From NCBI GenBank assembly GCA_977020255.1, contig CDROCS010005394.1, positions 1 to 64,000 on the forward strand: a stretch of 64,000 nucleotides of DNA, read 5' to 3'. Both the position numbers and the translations under genes were made by a program. Position 1 is the stretch's first letter. The number at the start of each line of letters is the position of its first letter. The DNA comes from Obrimoposthia wandeli. Its lineage: Eukaryota. The notes beneath the pieces were generated by a model that was not told where the DNA came from, did not search any database, and worked only from the letters and a program-made list of their open reading frames with translations. Below are positions 46,586 through 50,884 of this stretch, one piece after another.

Positions 46586-47257
46586 ATGAACATCGAACTG
46601 CTGTTATCTCTCGCTATTATCCACGCTGTTGCTTTAGCCAGCCCAGGCCCTGACTTTGCCTTAGTGGTCAAACTCGCGAGCCAAGAATCAAGAAATACCG
46701 CCATTGCTTCTGCTGTCGGTATCTCAATTGCTATTTTAATTCATACTATTTTAAGTTTAACTGGTGTGAGTCTTATAATTAAGAGCTCACAAACCTTGTA
46801 TATGATCGTACAAATGCTAGGGGCAAGTTACTTAGCATGGATGGGATTTGGCGCCGTAAAAGGCGCGCTACAACACTGGAAGGCAAGAATATCAGTCGAT
46901 GATAATCAACTGAAATTAAATAAATTAACGCCAAAACAAGGCTTCATGCAAGGGCTTTGGACTAACTTGCTCAATCCAAAAGCGATGGTGTTTTTCATTA
47001 TTTTATTTTCGGCCATGATCACACCAGATGTCAGTTTACTCACTAAGTTATCTGCCACTGTTATCATGCTGGTATTATCGTTAGTGTGGTTTATATTTAT
47101 TGCTTTAATTTTATCAAAACCAGCTATCCAAACTCGCGTACAAAAAGCAGCACCGGCAATCAACTTATTCACCGGCATGCTGTTTATCGCGGTATCAAGT
47201 ACGATCATGTATAGCGTGCTTAAAGGCGCGATTATATTTAGTGAAAGTACTATTTAG
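46586..47257 (+). CDS. LysE family exporter
   Basis: SPGPDF, GASYLAWMG and TNLLNPKA motifs. Confidence 0.88.
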   Translation: MNIELLLSLAIIHAVALASPGPDFALVVKLASQESRNTAIASAVGISIAILIHTILSLTGVSLIIKSSQTLYMIVQMLGASYLAWMGFGAVKGALQHWKARISVDDNQLKLNKLTPKQGFMQGLWTNLLNPKAMVFFIILFSAMITPDVSLLTKLSATVIMLVLSLVWFIFIALILSKPAIQTRVQKAAPAINLFTGMLFIAVSSTIMYSVLKGAIIFSESTI

Positions 47258-47765
47258 AGTGAGAATGAGGGTAAGAGTGAGCTTGTATAGTTAATGCCAT
47301 CGGCTTAGCGCCTTGCCCATAACTTGGACATACCGAGATATGCTCAAGACCCTTAAAGCCGTATCGCTGCCAAAACGACGCTGAATCTTGCACTGCGGTT
47401 AATAATAGTTGCTGGCAACCTAAGGCTTGCATGGCGGTGATGAAATGATGAATTAATTGGCTGGCAATACCTAAACCTCTCGCCTTATGCGATATAGCGA
47501 GATCGTGTAGGTAAACCTCACTGTATCCGGTATCAATTGCAACCTCTTCACCGAGTTGTGGTACTTGCATTCCAGTCCATGGATGCGCTAATAAATACCC
47601 AAGCACAACATCATCCACGTCTGAAAACACAAAACAGCTCGTCGGTGATGCTATCCACTTACTTCTTAATACCGCTAAATCTTCATTTAAATAACTAGCG
47701 TAAGCATGCGACTGGATCTGCATGATCGCATCCCAGTCAGTCTTATTAATCGTTCTGATTGGCAT
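47250..47765 (-). CDS. GNAT acetyltransferase
   Basis: GYLLAHP, YLHDLAI, ARGLGIA and FWQRYGF motifs. Confidence 0.82.
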   Translation of the reverse strand: MPIRTINKTDWDAIMQIQSHAYASYLNEDLAVLRSKWIASPTSCFVFSDVDDVVLGYLLAHPWTGMQVPQLGEEVAIDTGYSEVYLHDLAISHKARGLGIASQLIHHFITAMQALGCQQLLLTAVQDSASFWQRYGFKGLEHISVCPSYGQGAKPMALTIQAHSYPHSHSK

Positions 47766-47794
47766 GCACTTTTCCTAGCTAAGCTTCGACATCA

Positions 47795-48265
47795 TCAAAC
47801 TAGTTCTTTGGTCATATACAAGCTGTACGGATCTTCACGATAATCAGCAAAAGGCGCACATTCGTTAAAGCCAAAATCGCGATATAACTTTTGCGCAGGT
47901 ATGAATGAATCAGGCGTGCCCGTTTCTAAACTCATTTTGGTGATCCCTTGCTGCTGAGCTGAAGTGAGAATATGCGTCAATAATCGTTGAGCAACACCTT
48001 GTCGAAGGTGAGTACTCGATGTGCGCATTGATTTTAACTCTGCATGCCCTGTTTCAATCACTTTTATCGCACCACAACCTGCAAGTTCACCCGCTATCCA
48101 GGCACTCCAAAAGGTTACATCTGGCGCTTGTAGTCCGCTAATATCTAACGAGTGCACACTTTCAGCAGGCGTATGATCAAGCATATCTTGATGATGCTCT
48201 TGCAACAACAACGCGACTTCTTTACCTGTTAAATCATCAATTCGAATTTCCATTTCAGTTCCCAT
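47795..48265 (-). CDS. GNAT acetyltransferase (YsnE-like)
   Basis: EIRIDDL, ELKSMRT, LRQGVA, SLETG and YRDFGF. Start at 48265 or 48253. Confidence 0.82.
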   Translation of the reverse strand: MGTEMEIRIDDLTGKEVALLLQEHHQDMLDHTPAESVHSLDISGLQAPDVTFWSAWIAGELAGCGAIKVIETGHAELKSMRTSSTHLRQGVAQRLLTHILTSAQQQGITKMSLETGTPDSFIPAQKLYRDFGFNECAPFADYREDPYSLYMTKELV

Positions 48266-48306
48266 TGGTAGTGTTCTGTACAGTTGGCTAATGACAACGT
48301 GAGCCT

Positions 48307-48618
48307 TCAATAATGCACTGCTAACCAAACAGTTTCAACATTTGGATCCGTCCACGCCACTTTGTGTTTTTGATGCGCTGGGATATTAAGGTAATCACCC
48401 GCTTTCAGGGTAACAGAAGGCTTGTCATCAAAGCCGATAATTGCGCTACCTGCAAGAACAATAACCCACTCATGTTGCTCTTGATCATACCAACCAAAAT
48501 CTGGCGATGTATGCCCTTTAGAGATAATACGTTCTATTGTTACCTTGTCACTGCTAACGAGATCTTCAAATACCTCGTTACTTAGATCTGTGGGGATCAA
48601 ATCAAAAATATTATGCAT
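48307..48618 (-). CDS. Cupin domain protein
   Basis: IERIISKGH, WYDQEQHEWV, GDYLNIPAHQKHKV and TVWLAVHY motifs. Confidence 0.82.
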   Translation of the reverse strand: MHNIFDLIPTDLSNEVFEDLVSSDKVTIERIISKGHTSPDFGWYDQEQHEWVIVLAGSAIIGFDDKPSVTLKAGDYLNIPAHQKHKVAWTDPNVETVWLAVHY

Positions 48619-48631
48619 GTTTAATCATCCT

Positions 48632-49690
48632 TTAAAACAGATTTAAACCAAAGGCACTTTTTACCTGACGTAATACCTCATTAGACTCATCTTGAGAGCG
48701 TTCTGTTCCTGCTTTCAAGATCGCAATTAGCTGTGAGCGATCTGCGATGAACTCTTCTCGGCGCTGACGAATTGGCTTTAGCAGATCTTGTAAACATTCT
48801 TCTAAGATCTTCTTCACGGTGCCATCACCTAAACCACCAGCGGAATATTGCGCCTTTAAATTAGCCACATAGTCTTGATCTTGATGGAAGGCATCTAAAT
48901 ACGTAAATACCACATTGCCTTCGATTTTCCCTGGATCACACACACGTAAATGATTCGGATCTGTATACATGGCTTTCACCGCTTTGCTGATCTCTTTTTC
49001 ACTTGAACTTAGCATGATGGTATTGCCCATCGATTTAGACATTTTACTTTTACCGTCGACACTCGGTAAACGTGAAACCTTACTTAATAATGGCTTACAT
49101 TCAACTAAAATGCTTTGCTTGGCTATATGGTTTAATCTTCTGACGATCTCATTGGTCTGTTCCAACATGGGTAACTGATCTTCACCTACAGGTACTAATG
49201 TAGCTTTAAATGCAGTAATGTCTGCTGCTTGACTAATTGGATATGTTAAGAAACCAGCAGGAATAGAGCGGCCAAATGATTTACTTTTGATCTCGTTTTT
49301 AACCGTGGGATTACGTTCTAAACGGGCAATAGACACTAAGTTTGAATAATACATCGTTAGCTCTGCGAGTGCAGGGATCCCTGATTGTAAACAGATCGTG
49401 GTTTTTAATGGATCGATGCCTGCGGCAAGATAGTCCGCGACAACATTGAGAATATTTGATGATACTTTTTGCGGATTATGGCCGTTATCAGTAAGCCCCT
49501 GCATGTCAGCGACTAAGATCGTTTGCTGATACTGATGCTGTAGCTTAACGCGTTGTTGTAAGGAACCGACATAATGACCGAGGTGCAAAGAGCCAGTAGC
49601 GCGATCGCCAGTGAGAATTTTTTCTTTAATATCGGTATTTAGGGCTAAATGAGATGCTTGGTTTAAAGCTATTGATTGATTGTTTTTCAT
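48632..49690 (-). CDS. trpS: Tryptophan-tRNA ligase, non-canonical (TGDRxTG, TrpRS II-like) type
   Basis: TGDRATGSLHLGH (HIGH), YPISQAADI, VPVGEDQ and KMSKS. Confidence 0.92.
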   Translation of the reverse strand: MKNNQSIALNQASHLALNTDIKEKILTGDRATGSLHLGHYVGSLQQRVKLQHQYQQTILVADMQGLTDNGHNPQKVSSNILNVVADYLAAGIDPLKTTICLQSGIPALAELTMYYSNLVSIARLERNPTVKNEIKSKSFGRSIPAGFLTYPISQAADITAFKATLVPVGEDQLPMLEQTNEIVRRLNHIAKQSILVECKPLLSKVSRLPSVDGKSKMSKSMGNTIMLSSSEKEISKAVKAMYTDPNHLRVCDPGKIEGNVVFTYLDAFHQDQDYVANLKAQYSAGGLGDGTVKKILEECLQDLLKPIRQRREEFIADRSQLIAILKAGTERSQDESNEVLRQVKSAFGLNLF

Positions 49691-49785
49691 TGTATATATC
49701 CAAAATAAATTACCGGAGACATACTTACGTTTTATTCATCAGCTGCCATCCGGCGATCTGTGAACAAAAGTATTCAACACCGCTC

Positions 49786-49845
49786 TTATAGAAGAGAGTG
49801 CCACCAAGATGTTGTGATAAGCGTAAAAATAAGGTTTAATTTCAT
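49786..49845 (-). CDS. Trp-Trp leader peptide MKLNLIFTLITTSWWHSLL
   Basis: ATG 49845 to TAA 49786 with tandem TGG TGG (49806-49801), 95 nt upstream of trpS. Checked codon by codon. Confidence 0.8.
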   Translation of the reverse strand: MKLNLIFTLITTSWWHSLL

Positions 49846-49851
49846 CTATTC

Positions 49852-49880
49852 AAAGTATCAGCCTGTTAAAATTATCGCAA
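49852..49880 (-). promoter_or_regulatory. Sigma70 promoter for the leader and trpS
   Basis: TTGCGA-17 nt-TACTTT with extended TGn. Predicted +1 coincides with the A of the leader ATG. Confidence 0.55.
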
Positions 49881-49930
49881 GCGGTATTTAGGCCGACTTT
49901 CAGCATTAACTTAAAAATGGATTTACTTGC

Positions 49931-50884
49931 ATGGAAACTATTGTCTTTCTCGACCGCGCTACAATCCCTGAACATATAACCATCCCTCAACCGAATGTTG
50001 ATTGTCAGTGGCAAGAATATGCGACAACGACAAGTGAGCAAGTAATTGAACGCCTGCAAAATGCAACTATTGTCATTACCAATAAAGTCATTTTAGATGC
50101 GCAGATATTAAGTCAGTGCCCACAATTGAAAATGATTGCGGTGGCAGCAACAGGCACCAATAATATCGATTTGGCGTATTGCCATCAGCACAATATTACC
50201 GTCAGTAATATCCAAGGTTATGCGACTAACTCAGTACCTGAACATGTGGTGGCGATGATGTTTGCGCTAAAACGCAATCTAGTCGGTTACCATCAAGATA
50301 TTCAAGCGGGTGTGTGGCAGCAGCAAAAACAGTTCTGTTTCTTTAGCCACCCTATTACTGATATTGCAGGTTCGACACTGGGTGTGATTGGTAAAGGCAG
50401 TCTCGGTAATGCCGTAGCAGTATTAGCCAAAGCATTGGGTATGATAGTACTGTTTGCTGAGCGTAAAGATACAGACAAATGTCGTGAAGGTTACAGCCCC
50501 TTTGAATCAGTATTACAACAAGCGGATGTGCTGACATTACATTGCCCACTGGCAGAACAGACCCGAAACATCATCGGTCGTGAAGAATTTAAGCGAATGA
50601 AAAACAGTAGTATTTTGATTAATGCAGGACGTGGTGGTTTGGTTGATGAAGTCGCACTAGTAGAAGCATTACAGACTCAACAAATTGCTGGTGCGGGTGT
50701 TGATGTGTTTACTCAAGAACCTGCCGATAACAGTAACCCGTTAATTGCCAATGCCCACTTACCAAATCTGATCTTAACCCCACATGTGGCCTGGGGTTCC
50801 GATTCAGCCATTCAGACTTTGGCCAATCAGTTGATTAATAATATTGAACAATTTATCGCTGGAAAGCCACAAAACCAAGTTTGA
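49931..50884 (+). CDS. D-2-hydroxyacid dehydrogenase (glycerate/hydroxypyruvate reductase-like)
   Basis: ATGTNNID, GVIGKGSLG, LHCPL, INAGRG and LTPHVAW motifs. Confidence 0.9.
   Translation: METIVFLDRATIPEHITIPQPNVDCQWQEYATTTSEQVIERLQNATIVITNKVILDAQILSQCPQLKMIAVAATGTNNIDLAYCHQHNITVSNIQGYATNSVPEHVVAMMFALKRNLVGYHQDIQAGVWQQQKQFCFFSHPITDIAGSTLGVIGKGSLGNAVAVLAKALGMIVLFAERKDTDKCREGYSPFESVLQQADVLTLHCPLAEQTRNIIGREEFKRMKNSSILINAGRGGLVDEVALVEALQTQQIAGAGVDVFTQEPADNSNPLIANAHLPNLILTPHVAWGSDSAIQTLANQLINNIEQFIAGKPQNQV

Follow-up and report, generated by a model that had tools for sequence, protein, structure and literature searches.

A putative Trp-Trp leader-peptide attenuator upstream of the TrpRS II gene in Moritella and related Proteobacteria

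INTRODUCTION

Can a gene for a tryptophan--tRNA ligase sense the supply of charged tRNA-Trp through a leader peptide of its own? The question is raised by a 64,000-nucleotide stretch of DNA (positions 1 to 64,000 of contig CDROCS010005394.1, assembly GCA_977020255.1, filed under Obrimoposthia wandeli; here, the window), which is assigned to Moritella. On its minus strand, in a 240-nt intergenic gap upstream of a gene encoding a TrpRS II-type tryptophan--tRNA ligase (trpS2), lies a short open reading frame (ORF) with two consecutive Trp codons (WW). Our analysis indicates that this ORF very probably belongs to a leader-peptide attenuator of trpS2. We also consider it probable that the Moritella element is a ribosome-mediated attenuator of the trp type with a translational output, in which a ribosome stalled on the Trp codons would open the Shine-Dalgarno (SD) sequence of the auxiliary synthetase gene. 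Four parts of this picture are inferred: that the leader is translated, where its transcript starts, in which direction the switch works, and what role it plays in the cell.

RESULTS

What kind of synthetase does the gene encode? The ligase gene (48632..49690, minus strand) specifies a protein of 352 amino acids with the HIGH (as HLGH) and KMSKS motifs, and its closest genome match is Moritella dasanensis, at 99% protein identity. The protein matched TIGR00233 with 243 bits. Its best match in the PDB was TrpRS II of Deinococcus radiodurans (1yi8/2a4m; E = 1.8e-110), and TrpRS of the E. coli and Bacillus types matched far more weakly (E = 1e-31 to 1e-38). Because it is so much nearer to the D. 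radiodurans enzyme than to either of these types, the ligase is a non-canonical TrpRS paralogue. An earlier reading of this DNA, made from the letters without database searches (the sequence-only reading), had claimed a non-canonical TrpRS here, and the contrast between ∼1e-110 for D. radiodurans TrpRS II and ∼1e-31 for the E. coli type bears it out.

The leader ORF (49786..49845, minus strand, as are all leader features below) comprises 19 codons plus TAA and encodes the peptide MKLNLIFTLITTSWWHSLL. Its ATG lies at 49845-49843, its TAA at 49788-49786, and the putatively regulatory tandem Trp codons, TGGTGG, at 49801..49806. There is no SD in the 6 nt that precede the ATG (GAATAG). The 19-residue WW ORF without an SD reads exactly as the sequence-only reading had described it.

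Is this ORF conserved? We compared 80 orthologous loci, one genome per species. A script found an ATG-started WW ORF at 78 of them, and locus L013 carries an equivalent ORF with a GTG start, which brings the total to 79 of 80. A search for such upstream ORFs in orthologues was the check that the sequence-only reading had proposed, and it proved positive at nearly every locus. The positive loci span Moritella, Photobacterium, Vibrio (including V. cholerae), Alteromonas, Pseudoalteromonas, Shewanella, Colwellia, Paraglaciecola, and others. The leaders are 16 to 23 codons long, end in WW[R/H/C]-x(1-3)-stop, and terminate ∼95 to 125 nt ahead of the ligase start. The 79 leaders differ freely in the residues N-terminal of WW; TGGTGG itself does not vary, nor does much of the RNA that follows it. 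On this comparative evidence, the WW leader lies far beyond chance. The significance of the element comes from its conservation across loci. The region taken alone is unremarkable: a single-sequence fold gave z = -1.4.

The sole locus without a leader, L044, has 150 nt of different upstream sequence at a contig end. In this uncultured Vibrio contig, the opposite strand of positions 1-150 resembles, by eye, the start of an insertion sequence (IS) transposase gene, and the attenuator may have been displaced by an insertion. Two metagenome-assembled genomes labelled Desulfobacterium (L005 and L006) encode a TrpRS II 82 to 83% identical to that of Moritella, with the same WW leader, MKKTNDFTFILTCWWHSLL. 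These copies likely reflect mis-binning or a recent transfer from a gamma-proteobacterium.

How would the leader be transcribed? In the window, a -35 element (TTGCGA, 49875..49880) and an extended -10 element (49852..49860) are separated by a 17-nt spacer that contains the TG of the latter. The extended -10 element is made up of this TG (49860-49859) and TACTTT (49857-49852), and it lies 6 nt before the leader ATG. Among 76 distinct loci, T, T, and G occupy positions -35 to -33 from the leader ATG in 68, 53, and 49 loci, respectively, and the pattern TGnTAnnnT ends 6 to 7 nt before the leader ATG in 56. For most of the remaining loci, the script had chosen a second in-frame ATG. A simple consensus promoter scan of the window returned no leader promoter because the -10 element fits only 3 of 6 consensus bases; the promoter was seen only after the orthologues had been aligned on the leader ATG. 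Since the -10 element stands at a fixed distance, +1 is predicted at or beside the A of the ATG, and this geometry supports a leaderless leader mRNA. The TGn-extended promoter and leaderless start of the sequence-only reading are therefore present as elements with a conserved spacing, the start itself being a prediction.

What does the RNA downstream of the Trp codons do? We aligned 75 non-identical leaders (alignment A1, in which TGGTGG forms the invariant columns 16-21). The alignment is MAFFT-based and not structure-aware, and its sequences are related, so that counts of compensatory changes are not counts of independent events. Seven segments take part in five conserved, mutually exclusive helices, most of them with compensatory changes, and all five were compared with controls slid by 1 to 3 columns; the slid registers were only 23 to 64% paired.

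Helix 1:2 joins segment 1 (49792..49801), which begins at the last G of the second Trp codon, to segment 2 (49777..49787), which takes in two bases of the leader stop codon. It is 87% paired across the 75 leaders, with the stop codon in or beside its loop, and the window duplex (49801-49792 with 49787-49777) has a predicted energy of -9.0 kcal/mol; in the Moritella clade the register is slightly shifted. In all 6 sequences in which UGC replaces CGC as the codon after WW, the partner base is A instead of G, a CG-to-UA compensation. The R/H/C swaps after WW track the pairing partner, which argues for a constraint at the level of the RNA.

Segment 2 can also pair with the first part of segment 3 (49744..49757): GCGGT (49783-49779) faces ATCGC (3a, 49757-49753). 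This helix, 2:3, is 92.9% paired, and all 75 sequences can form five of its six pairs. The remainder of segment 3 (GCCGGATGGCA, 3/3b, 49754-49744) pairs with segment 4 (GTATGTCTCCGGT, 49712..49724). Helix 3:4, initially recognized over 9 pairs, reaches 13 with one bulge and is 92.6% paired. Compensatory changes occur at 7 pairs, one of which (91/145) is UA in 42 sequences and CG in 33. In the window, GCCGGA:TCCGGT extends to 10 pairs with one bulge, at -13.5 kcal/mol. RNAalifold, run independently, returned 1:2 plus the extended 3:4 as the consensus structure.

Segment 4 is also an anti-SD. Its 5' part pairs with segment 5 (GGATATATAC, 49692..49701), the SD region of the TrpRS gene, and this helix, 4:5, is 94% paired. 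Its flanks covary (AU/GC at pair 139/180), and in the window GTATGTCTCC lies over the SD at -8.4 kcal/mol. The sequence-only reading had offered translational control as one option, and sequestration of the SD now has comparative support from these leaders. The SD of the window reads GGAT, where M. dasanensis (L001) and nearly all of the 75 relatives have GGAG; the change could be a sequencing error or a genuine difference between strains that weakens translation as well as its control, and the gene may be expressed less here than in M. dasanensis. In many Vibrio leaders (L075 and L029, for example), GATC stands directly after segment 4 (AGTAGC-GATC-TATTT; A1 columns 151-154), in the loop of the anti-SD:SD hairpin, where, if it has any role, it might be, for instance, a Dam site.

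Two further features emerged beyond the pairings named in the sequence-only reading (the hairpin after WW, GCGGT:ATCGC, GCCGGA:TCCGGT, and GTATGTCTCC over the SD), all of which exist and are conserved. The first is an extra helix, X:X', formed by segments X (49758..49769) and X' (49730..49742); X has a competitor in a small hairpin (GAAT 49775-49772 with GTTC 49765-49762). In this non-structure-aware alignment X:X' is 78.6% paired, with compensatory change at 9 of 12 pairs, and the window duplex has -8.6 kcal/mol. Segment 3/3b supplies the top and loop of X:X'. The second feature is that segment 3, which reads GCCGGAUGGCA in the window and GCUGCUGGAAGGUA in Vibrio, is effectively a copy of the SD region. 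It is an SD mimic, or anti-anti-SD, with its GG at 49747-49746, and competes with the real SD for the anti-SD.

Could the leader sense something other than charged tRNA-Trp? The conserved RNA might bind another factor, such as CsrA at GGA motifs, or the peptide might be a TnaC-like arrest peptide that senses free tryptophan. GGA motifs do occur in the SD and in the conserved loop of X:X', CNGGAAGG, and the C-terminus WW[R/H/C]S is fairly conserved. However, ATG, frame, WW, and stop are kept at 79 of 80 loci while the N-terminal residues are free, and the R/H/C replacements follow RNA pairing. The conserved W..D..P spacing and nascent peptide of TnaC are absent among the 79 leaders, which show no pattern of the kind W-x3-D-x7-P. 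Conservation of the loop GG is already explained because it pairs with the anti-SD in 73 to 75 of the 75 sequences. These observations make a sensor of this other kind very improbable.

How, then, might the helices work as an attenuator? The extended -10 promoter would start the transcript at the A of the leader ATG, giving a leaderless leader, and a ribosome on the 19 codons would gauge, at the two UGG codons, how much charged tRNA-Trp is available. When Trp-tRNA is abundant, this ribosome would reach the stop codon and cover segments 1 and 2, and 1:2 would form on its release; X:X' would then lock segment 3, the anti-SD would take the SD (4:5), and the synthetase would go untranslated. When Trp-tRNA is short, a ribosome stalled on WW would cover segment 1 and leave segment 2 free to pair with 3a, so that X:X' would be blocked and the SD-mimic part of segment 3 exposed. 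The exposed mimic would capture the anti-SD once it is transcribed (3:4), the SD would emerge unpaired, and the synthetase would be made. After departure of the ribosome, 1:2 would re-form and 3:4 would zip fully. The product would serve as a back-up or inhibitor-resistant TrpRS, induced by uncharged tRNA-Trp.

Does the element instead act on transcription? As the sequence-only reading had held, the window has no canonical terminator: a scan of 49400-50200 was empty. The 8 nt past helix 3:4 are 50% U, against 34% overall, and the window has AATTTATTTT there. An intrinsic terminator at 3:4 was rejected as a candidate, the U tract being enriched and not universal: P. luteoviolacea, L080, L065, and L005 retain the helices without it. 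The X:X' helix of Moritella is AU-rich, and X' is followed by AACGTAAGTATG, not by U's.

More distant relatives show what the element may have come from. TrpRS II genes at 59 to 66% identity carry similar leaders (MNRNVVISHLRRWWLPA, MNMTSFNHNYWWCCF, MNRKSLIAFSWWHG, METQPASPIVHCWWRA, MTSAPTTSLKWWRSF, and others) in hosts that include an E. coli IncFIB plasmid, Klebsiella plasmids, Aeromonas caviae, Proteus, Variovorax, Burkholderia, and Methylocystis. In E. coli/Klebsiella, Aeromonas, Variovorax, and Burkholderia, a canonical intrinsic terminator occupies the X:X' position, and in Aeromonas, Klebsiella, and Burkholderia X' corresponds in position to the terminator 3' arm. On the E. coli plasmid this terminator consists of 10 pairs, of which 7 are G-C, around a 4-nt loop, and ends in the tail TTGTTTCT. 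Its 5' arm is complementary to segment 2, which is the textbook arrangement of an antiterminator. A downstream segment complementary to the terminator 5' arm and loop (12 perfect pairs in Burkholderia), with an anti-SD adjoining, was recognized by eye.

In the terminator-bearing leaders, a stall must give expression. The transcripts that pass by virtue of the stall must also be translatable, or else the gene would never be expressed; in these transcripts segment 3 must therefore be taken up by the downstream segment, with the SD left free. Leaky read-through transcripts with the terminator hairpin folded would be shut by 4:5.

A covariance model derived from the marine leaders found a single site in the 64-kb window. 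It scored L013 at 75 bits, Salinivibrio at 56, Proteus at 35, Methylocystis at 34, Klebsiella at 25, and the E. coli plasmid and Aeromonas at 18 each; the Variovorax and Burkholderia leaders were not found with it. On this comparison the marine element belongs to one old family of the Proteobacteria, and its terminator has lost both the G+C-rich stem and the U tract. The sequence-only reading had proposed an attenuator on a synthetase gene in this lineage. The WW leader on a synthetase gene is indeed conserved; it is not peculiar to the lineage and is spread across the Proteobacteria.

It follows naturally to ask whether Moritella too uses classical transcription attenuation, with X:X', or the long 3:4 followed by its U-rich spacer, as a weak intrinsic or Rho-assisted terminator and with the anti-SD in a secondary role. 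The 1:2/2:3/3:4 layout is that of trp attenuators, the U content after 3:4 is raised and the window continues with AATTTATTTT, and the relatives bear true terminators. In nascent RNA ending at segment 4, moreover, 3:4 is dominant at equilibrium (probability 0.83), and a ribosome on WW, with 2:3 competing, lowers this value to 0.58. Against such a terminator stand the empty scan, a 3:4 loop of about 18 to 50 nt, the leaders that retain the helices with no U tract, and the AU-rich X:X' of Moritella with no U's after it. Were 3:4 the terminator, transcripts escaping through 2:3 would have their SD shut by 4:5, and there would never be any expression. We regard transcription attenuation in Moritella as unlikely and favor an output at the level of translation.

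Is the fate of the SD decided at equilibrium or during transcription? Equilibrium folding of the full-length leader leaves the SD paired, with a mean unpaired probability of ∼0.2. A thermodynamic switch was rejected, as the SD is closed at equilibrium in every ribosome-mask state. Two complete folds compete: 1:2 plus 3:4, with the SD open, and 1:2 plus X:X' plus 4:5, with the SD closed. Their median difference is 3 kcal/mol, the open fold is favored in 19 of the 75 leaders, and the direct-path findpath barrier between them is about 22 to 25 kcal/mol. Because the end states are nearly isoenergetic and the barrier is high, a choice made during transcription would persist. The proposed mechanism is also favored by the dominance of 3:4 on nascent RNA that stops at segment 4, when the SD has yet to be transcribed.

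We therefore turn to folding during transcription, which was approximated with a crude, Kinwalker-like simulation. The RNA grew in 2-nt steps and moved to the constrained minimum free energy fold if the findpath barrier was ≤7 or ≤9 kcal/mol. The simulation ignores pseudoknots, the lag of RNA polymerase, and real rates, and we use it as supporting evidence only. With the ribosome at WW, the SD finished open in 46 of the 75 leaders and closed in 25 to 26; with the ribosome at the stop codon, it was closed in 61 to 66 and open in 6 to 13. A stall opened the SD in 37 to 41 leaders, and the reverse was seen in 1 to 5. The window leader ended as 2:3 plus 3:4 with a free SD when stalled and as X:X' plus 4:5 when unstalled at the stop codon. 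In silico mutants behaved consistently with the model: the number of leaders open when stalled fell to 10 when the SD mimic (3b) was complemented and was 28 when segment 2 was complemented, and with X' complemented, 21 leaders instead of 6 were open in the absence of a stall. The same simulation was uninformative for the G+C-rich relatives because the terminator forms in both states. Taken together, the simulation and the homology with terminator-bearing leaders suggest that a stall would open the SD.

Several results weigh against this direction or limit it. Ribosome masks on the first or second Trp codon or on the stop codon leave the equilibrium pairing of the SD unchanged, so that the switch would depend wholly on folding kinetics, which are crudely modelled here. 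In the simulation, 25 of the 75 leaders remained closed despite the stall, and the window leader finished SD-open without any ribosome. The columns of helix 2:3 are shared with 1:2 and 3:4, so that this helix shows little covariation of its own. The window copy may be only weakly expressed or regulated, since its SD is GGAU and it is one of two sequences mismatched at 4:5 pair 141/177 (C-U). Finally, the simple logic of an alternating chain (1:2 plus 3:4 versus 2:3 plus 4:5) predicts the reverse direction.

That inverted logic deserves a closer look. A stall on WW would let segment 2 sequester segment 3, the anti-SD would shut the SD, and production of the synthetase would be confined to times of abundant charged tRNA-Trp, for instance to serve a use of Trp-tRNA outside translation. 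Besides being the simplest reading of the chain, it agrees with the RNAalifold consensus, which is the unstalled arrangement with a free SD, and with the fact that nascent 3:4 is likeliest without a stalled ribosome. The closest solved relative, D. radiodurans TrpRS II, also has a non-canonical role with nitric oxide synthase (PMC9437257). However, this direction was simulated in very few leaders, it leaves out X:X', which is conserved with covariation, and the homologous terminator-bearing leaders need a stall to mean "on." Moreover, with 2:3 formed, segment 4 would still find a free toehold in the SD-mimic half of segment 3. A reading in which a stall turns the gene off was the one first considered, and it was set aside on the strength of X:X', the SD mimic, and the terminator-bearing relatives; we now hold it to be rather improbable and retain the opening of the SD by a stalled ribosome as the probable direction.

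Is the leader already known under another name? With permissive thresholds (E up to 10), a search of Rfam with the window and ten related loci left the leader unmatched, including by Trp_leader (RF00513). Part of the leader ORF (49806-49827, minus strand) gave a weak match to STnc320, a Salmonella small RNA (16.7 bits, E = 2.8). That match is almost certainly due to chance, as it comprises 19 similar bases with 33 model positions deleted. No leader gene is annotated by RefSeq/PGAP upstream of the plasmid trpS.

TrpRS II-type genes at 55 to 66% identity were also seen on plasmids of E. coli (L081, pB379_2), Klebsiella (L082), Staphylococcus epidermidis (H29-H36), and Acinetobacter (H22). The E. 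coli copy lies between IS26 and IS1, beside the remnant of an annotated tryptophan permease gene (mtr), and the S. epidermidis copies are on plasmids of 15 to 64 kb (27 Staphylococcus records). The enterobacterial plasmid copies retain both WW leader and terminator. Inspection by eye revealed no WW ORF upstream of the S. epidermidis (L090) and Acinetobacter (L085) copies.

The neighborhood of the ligase gene in the window is as follows. A gene for a 2-hydroxyacid dehydrogenase (49931-50884, plus strand) is the divergent neighbor. On the strand of the ligase and 3' of it (47250-48618, minus strand) are genes for a 103-residue cupin, with a partial match to the TIGR03890 Nif11/cupin family, and for two GNAT acetyltransferases of 177 and 171 residues. 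The cupin start lies 13 nt past the ligase stop, and the cupin ORF overlaps the first GNAT ORF; the ligase, cupin, and GNAT genes may form an operon. Since trpS2 of V. cholerae is monocistronic, such a link was rejected as a general one.

DISCUSSION

How does this element compare with known systems? Trp-codon attenuators upstream of trp operons are textbook knowledge, and the E. coli leader peptide TrpL ends WWRTS. Like the E. coli trp leader (RF00513), the present element has a short ORF with tandem Trp codons three before the stop (WWHSLL here, WWRSN in Vibrio) and overlapping helices 1:2, 2:3, and 3:4, and we propose that ribosome position senses charged tRNA-Trp in the same manner. It differs in that it governs a synthetase paralogue, not biosynthesis, contains an SD mimic and an anti-SD:SD helix besides, and is apparently leaderless; in this lineage it also lacks an intrinsic terminator.

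Streptomyces offers a close precedent in the gene controlled. Its auxiliary TrpRS is indolmycin-resistant and induced on charging failure, and Vecchione and Sello reportedly carried out experimental work on the trpRS1 attenuator in 2010. There too, a Trp-codon leader stands before an auxiliary TrpRS (trpRS1/trpS). The actinobacterial element is a classical terminator/antiterminator, whereas the one described here is proteobacterial and, in marine gamma-proteobacteria, probably translational; we claim no relatedness between them. Trp-codon attenuators have been predicted upstream of Streptomyces trpS genes (PMC1262725), and a review of duplicated synthetases lists TrpRS II and TrpRS1 with no such regulation in Proteobacteria (PMC9437257). 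In the literature that we searched, no proteobacterial TrpRS II gene is described as having a WW leader; comparative-genomics papers of the early 2000s on proteobacterial attenuators might mention one.

Two other systems share parts of the design. The pheST attenuator of E. coli, the classical case of a synthetase in gamma-proteobacteria and mentioned in PMC1262725, likewise places a gamma-proteobacterial synthetase operon under a leader peptide rich in the cognate codon (pheM); unlike the present element, it has an intrinsic terminator and a normal SD-led leader ORF. In ermC and cat, as proposed here, a hairpin sequesters the SD until a ribosome that pauses in the upstream leader ORF rearranges the pairing of the RNA and frees it. 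Their stall needs a drug and a specific nascent peptide, with four RNA segments, whereas the present element would use a codon-specific starvation pause, an extra relay of SD mimic, anti-SD, and SD, and a relic terminator hairpin.

What would such a relay accomplish? We tentatively put forward a fuller account, in which two locks act in series, and which, taken as a whole, we consider somewhat less probable than even. The attenuator would be old and Proteobacteria-wide, and its leaderless WW leader would control a terminator hairpin with an SD mimic for its loop. Whether that hairpin has formed would be read by an anti-SD farther downstream, so that only transcripts made by virtue of a stall would be translatable. 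In marine gamma-proteobacteria the terminator would have decayed, leaving a purely translational, kinetically bistable switch. TrpRS II would be inducible by uncharged tRNA-Trp and would defend against natural inhibitors, such as indolmycin from co-occurring Pseudoalteromonas, and the cassette would have come to be carried on enterobacterial plasmids. The link to inhibitor resistance is conjecture, drawn from the Streptomyces precedent and from the TrpRS II genes on plasmids of S. epidermidis, Klebsiella, E. coli, and Acinetobacter.

If the account holds, these leaders would constitute a widespread, unannotated family of cis-regulatory RNAs outside Rfam, ranging over Vibrio (including V. cholerae), Photobacterium, Alteromonas, Shewanella, Aeromonas, plasmids of Klebsiella and E. 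coli, and beta- and alpha-proteobacteria. They would include a gamma-proteobacterial attenuator that uses a relay of SD mimic and anti-SD in place of a terminator and a conserved leaderless leader-peptide mRNA in a group in which leaderless mRNAs are rare. The family would also offer a handle on the role of TrpRS II as a back-up or inhibitor-resistant synthetase induced by uncharged tRNA-Trp. Lastly, with members that run from a strong terminator to none, it would form a natural series in which to see how transcriptional attenuators become translational ones.

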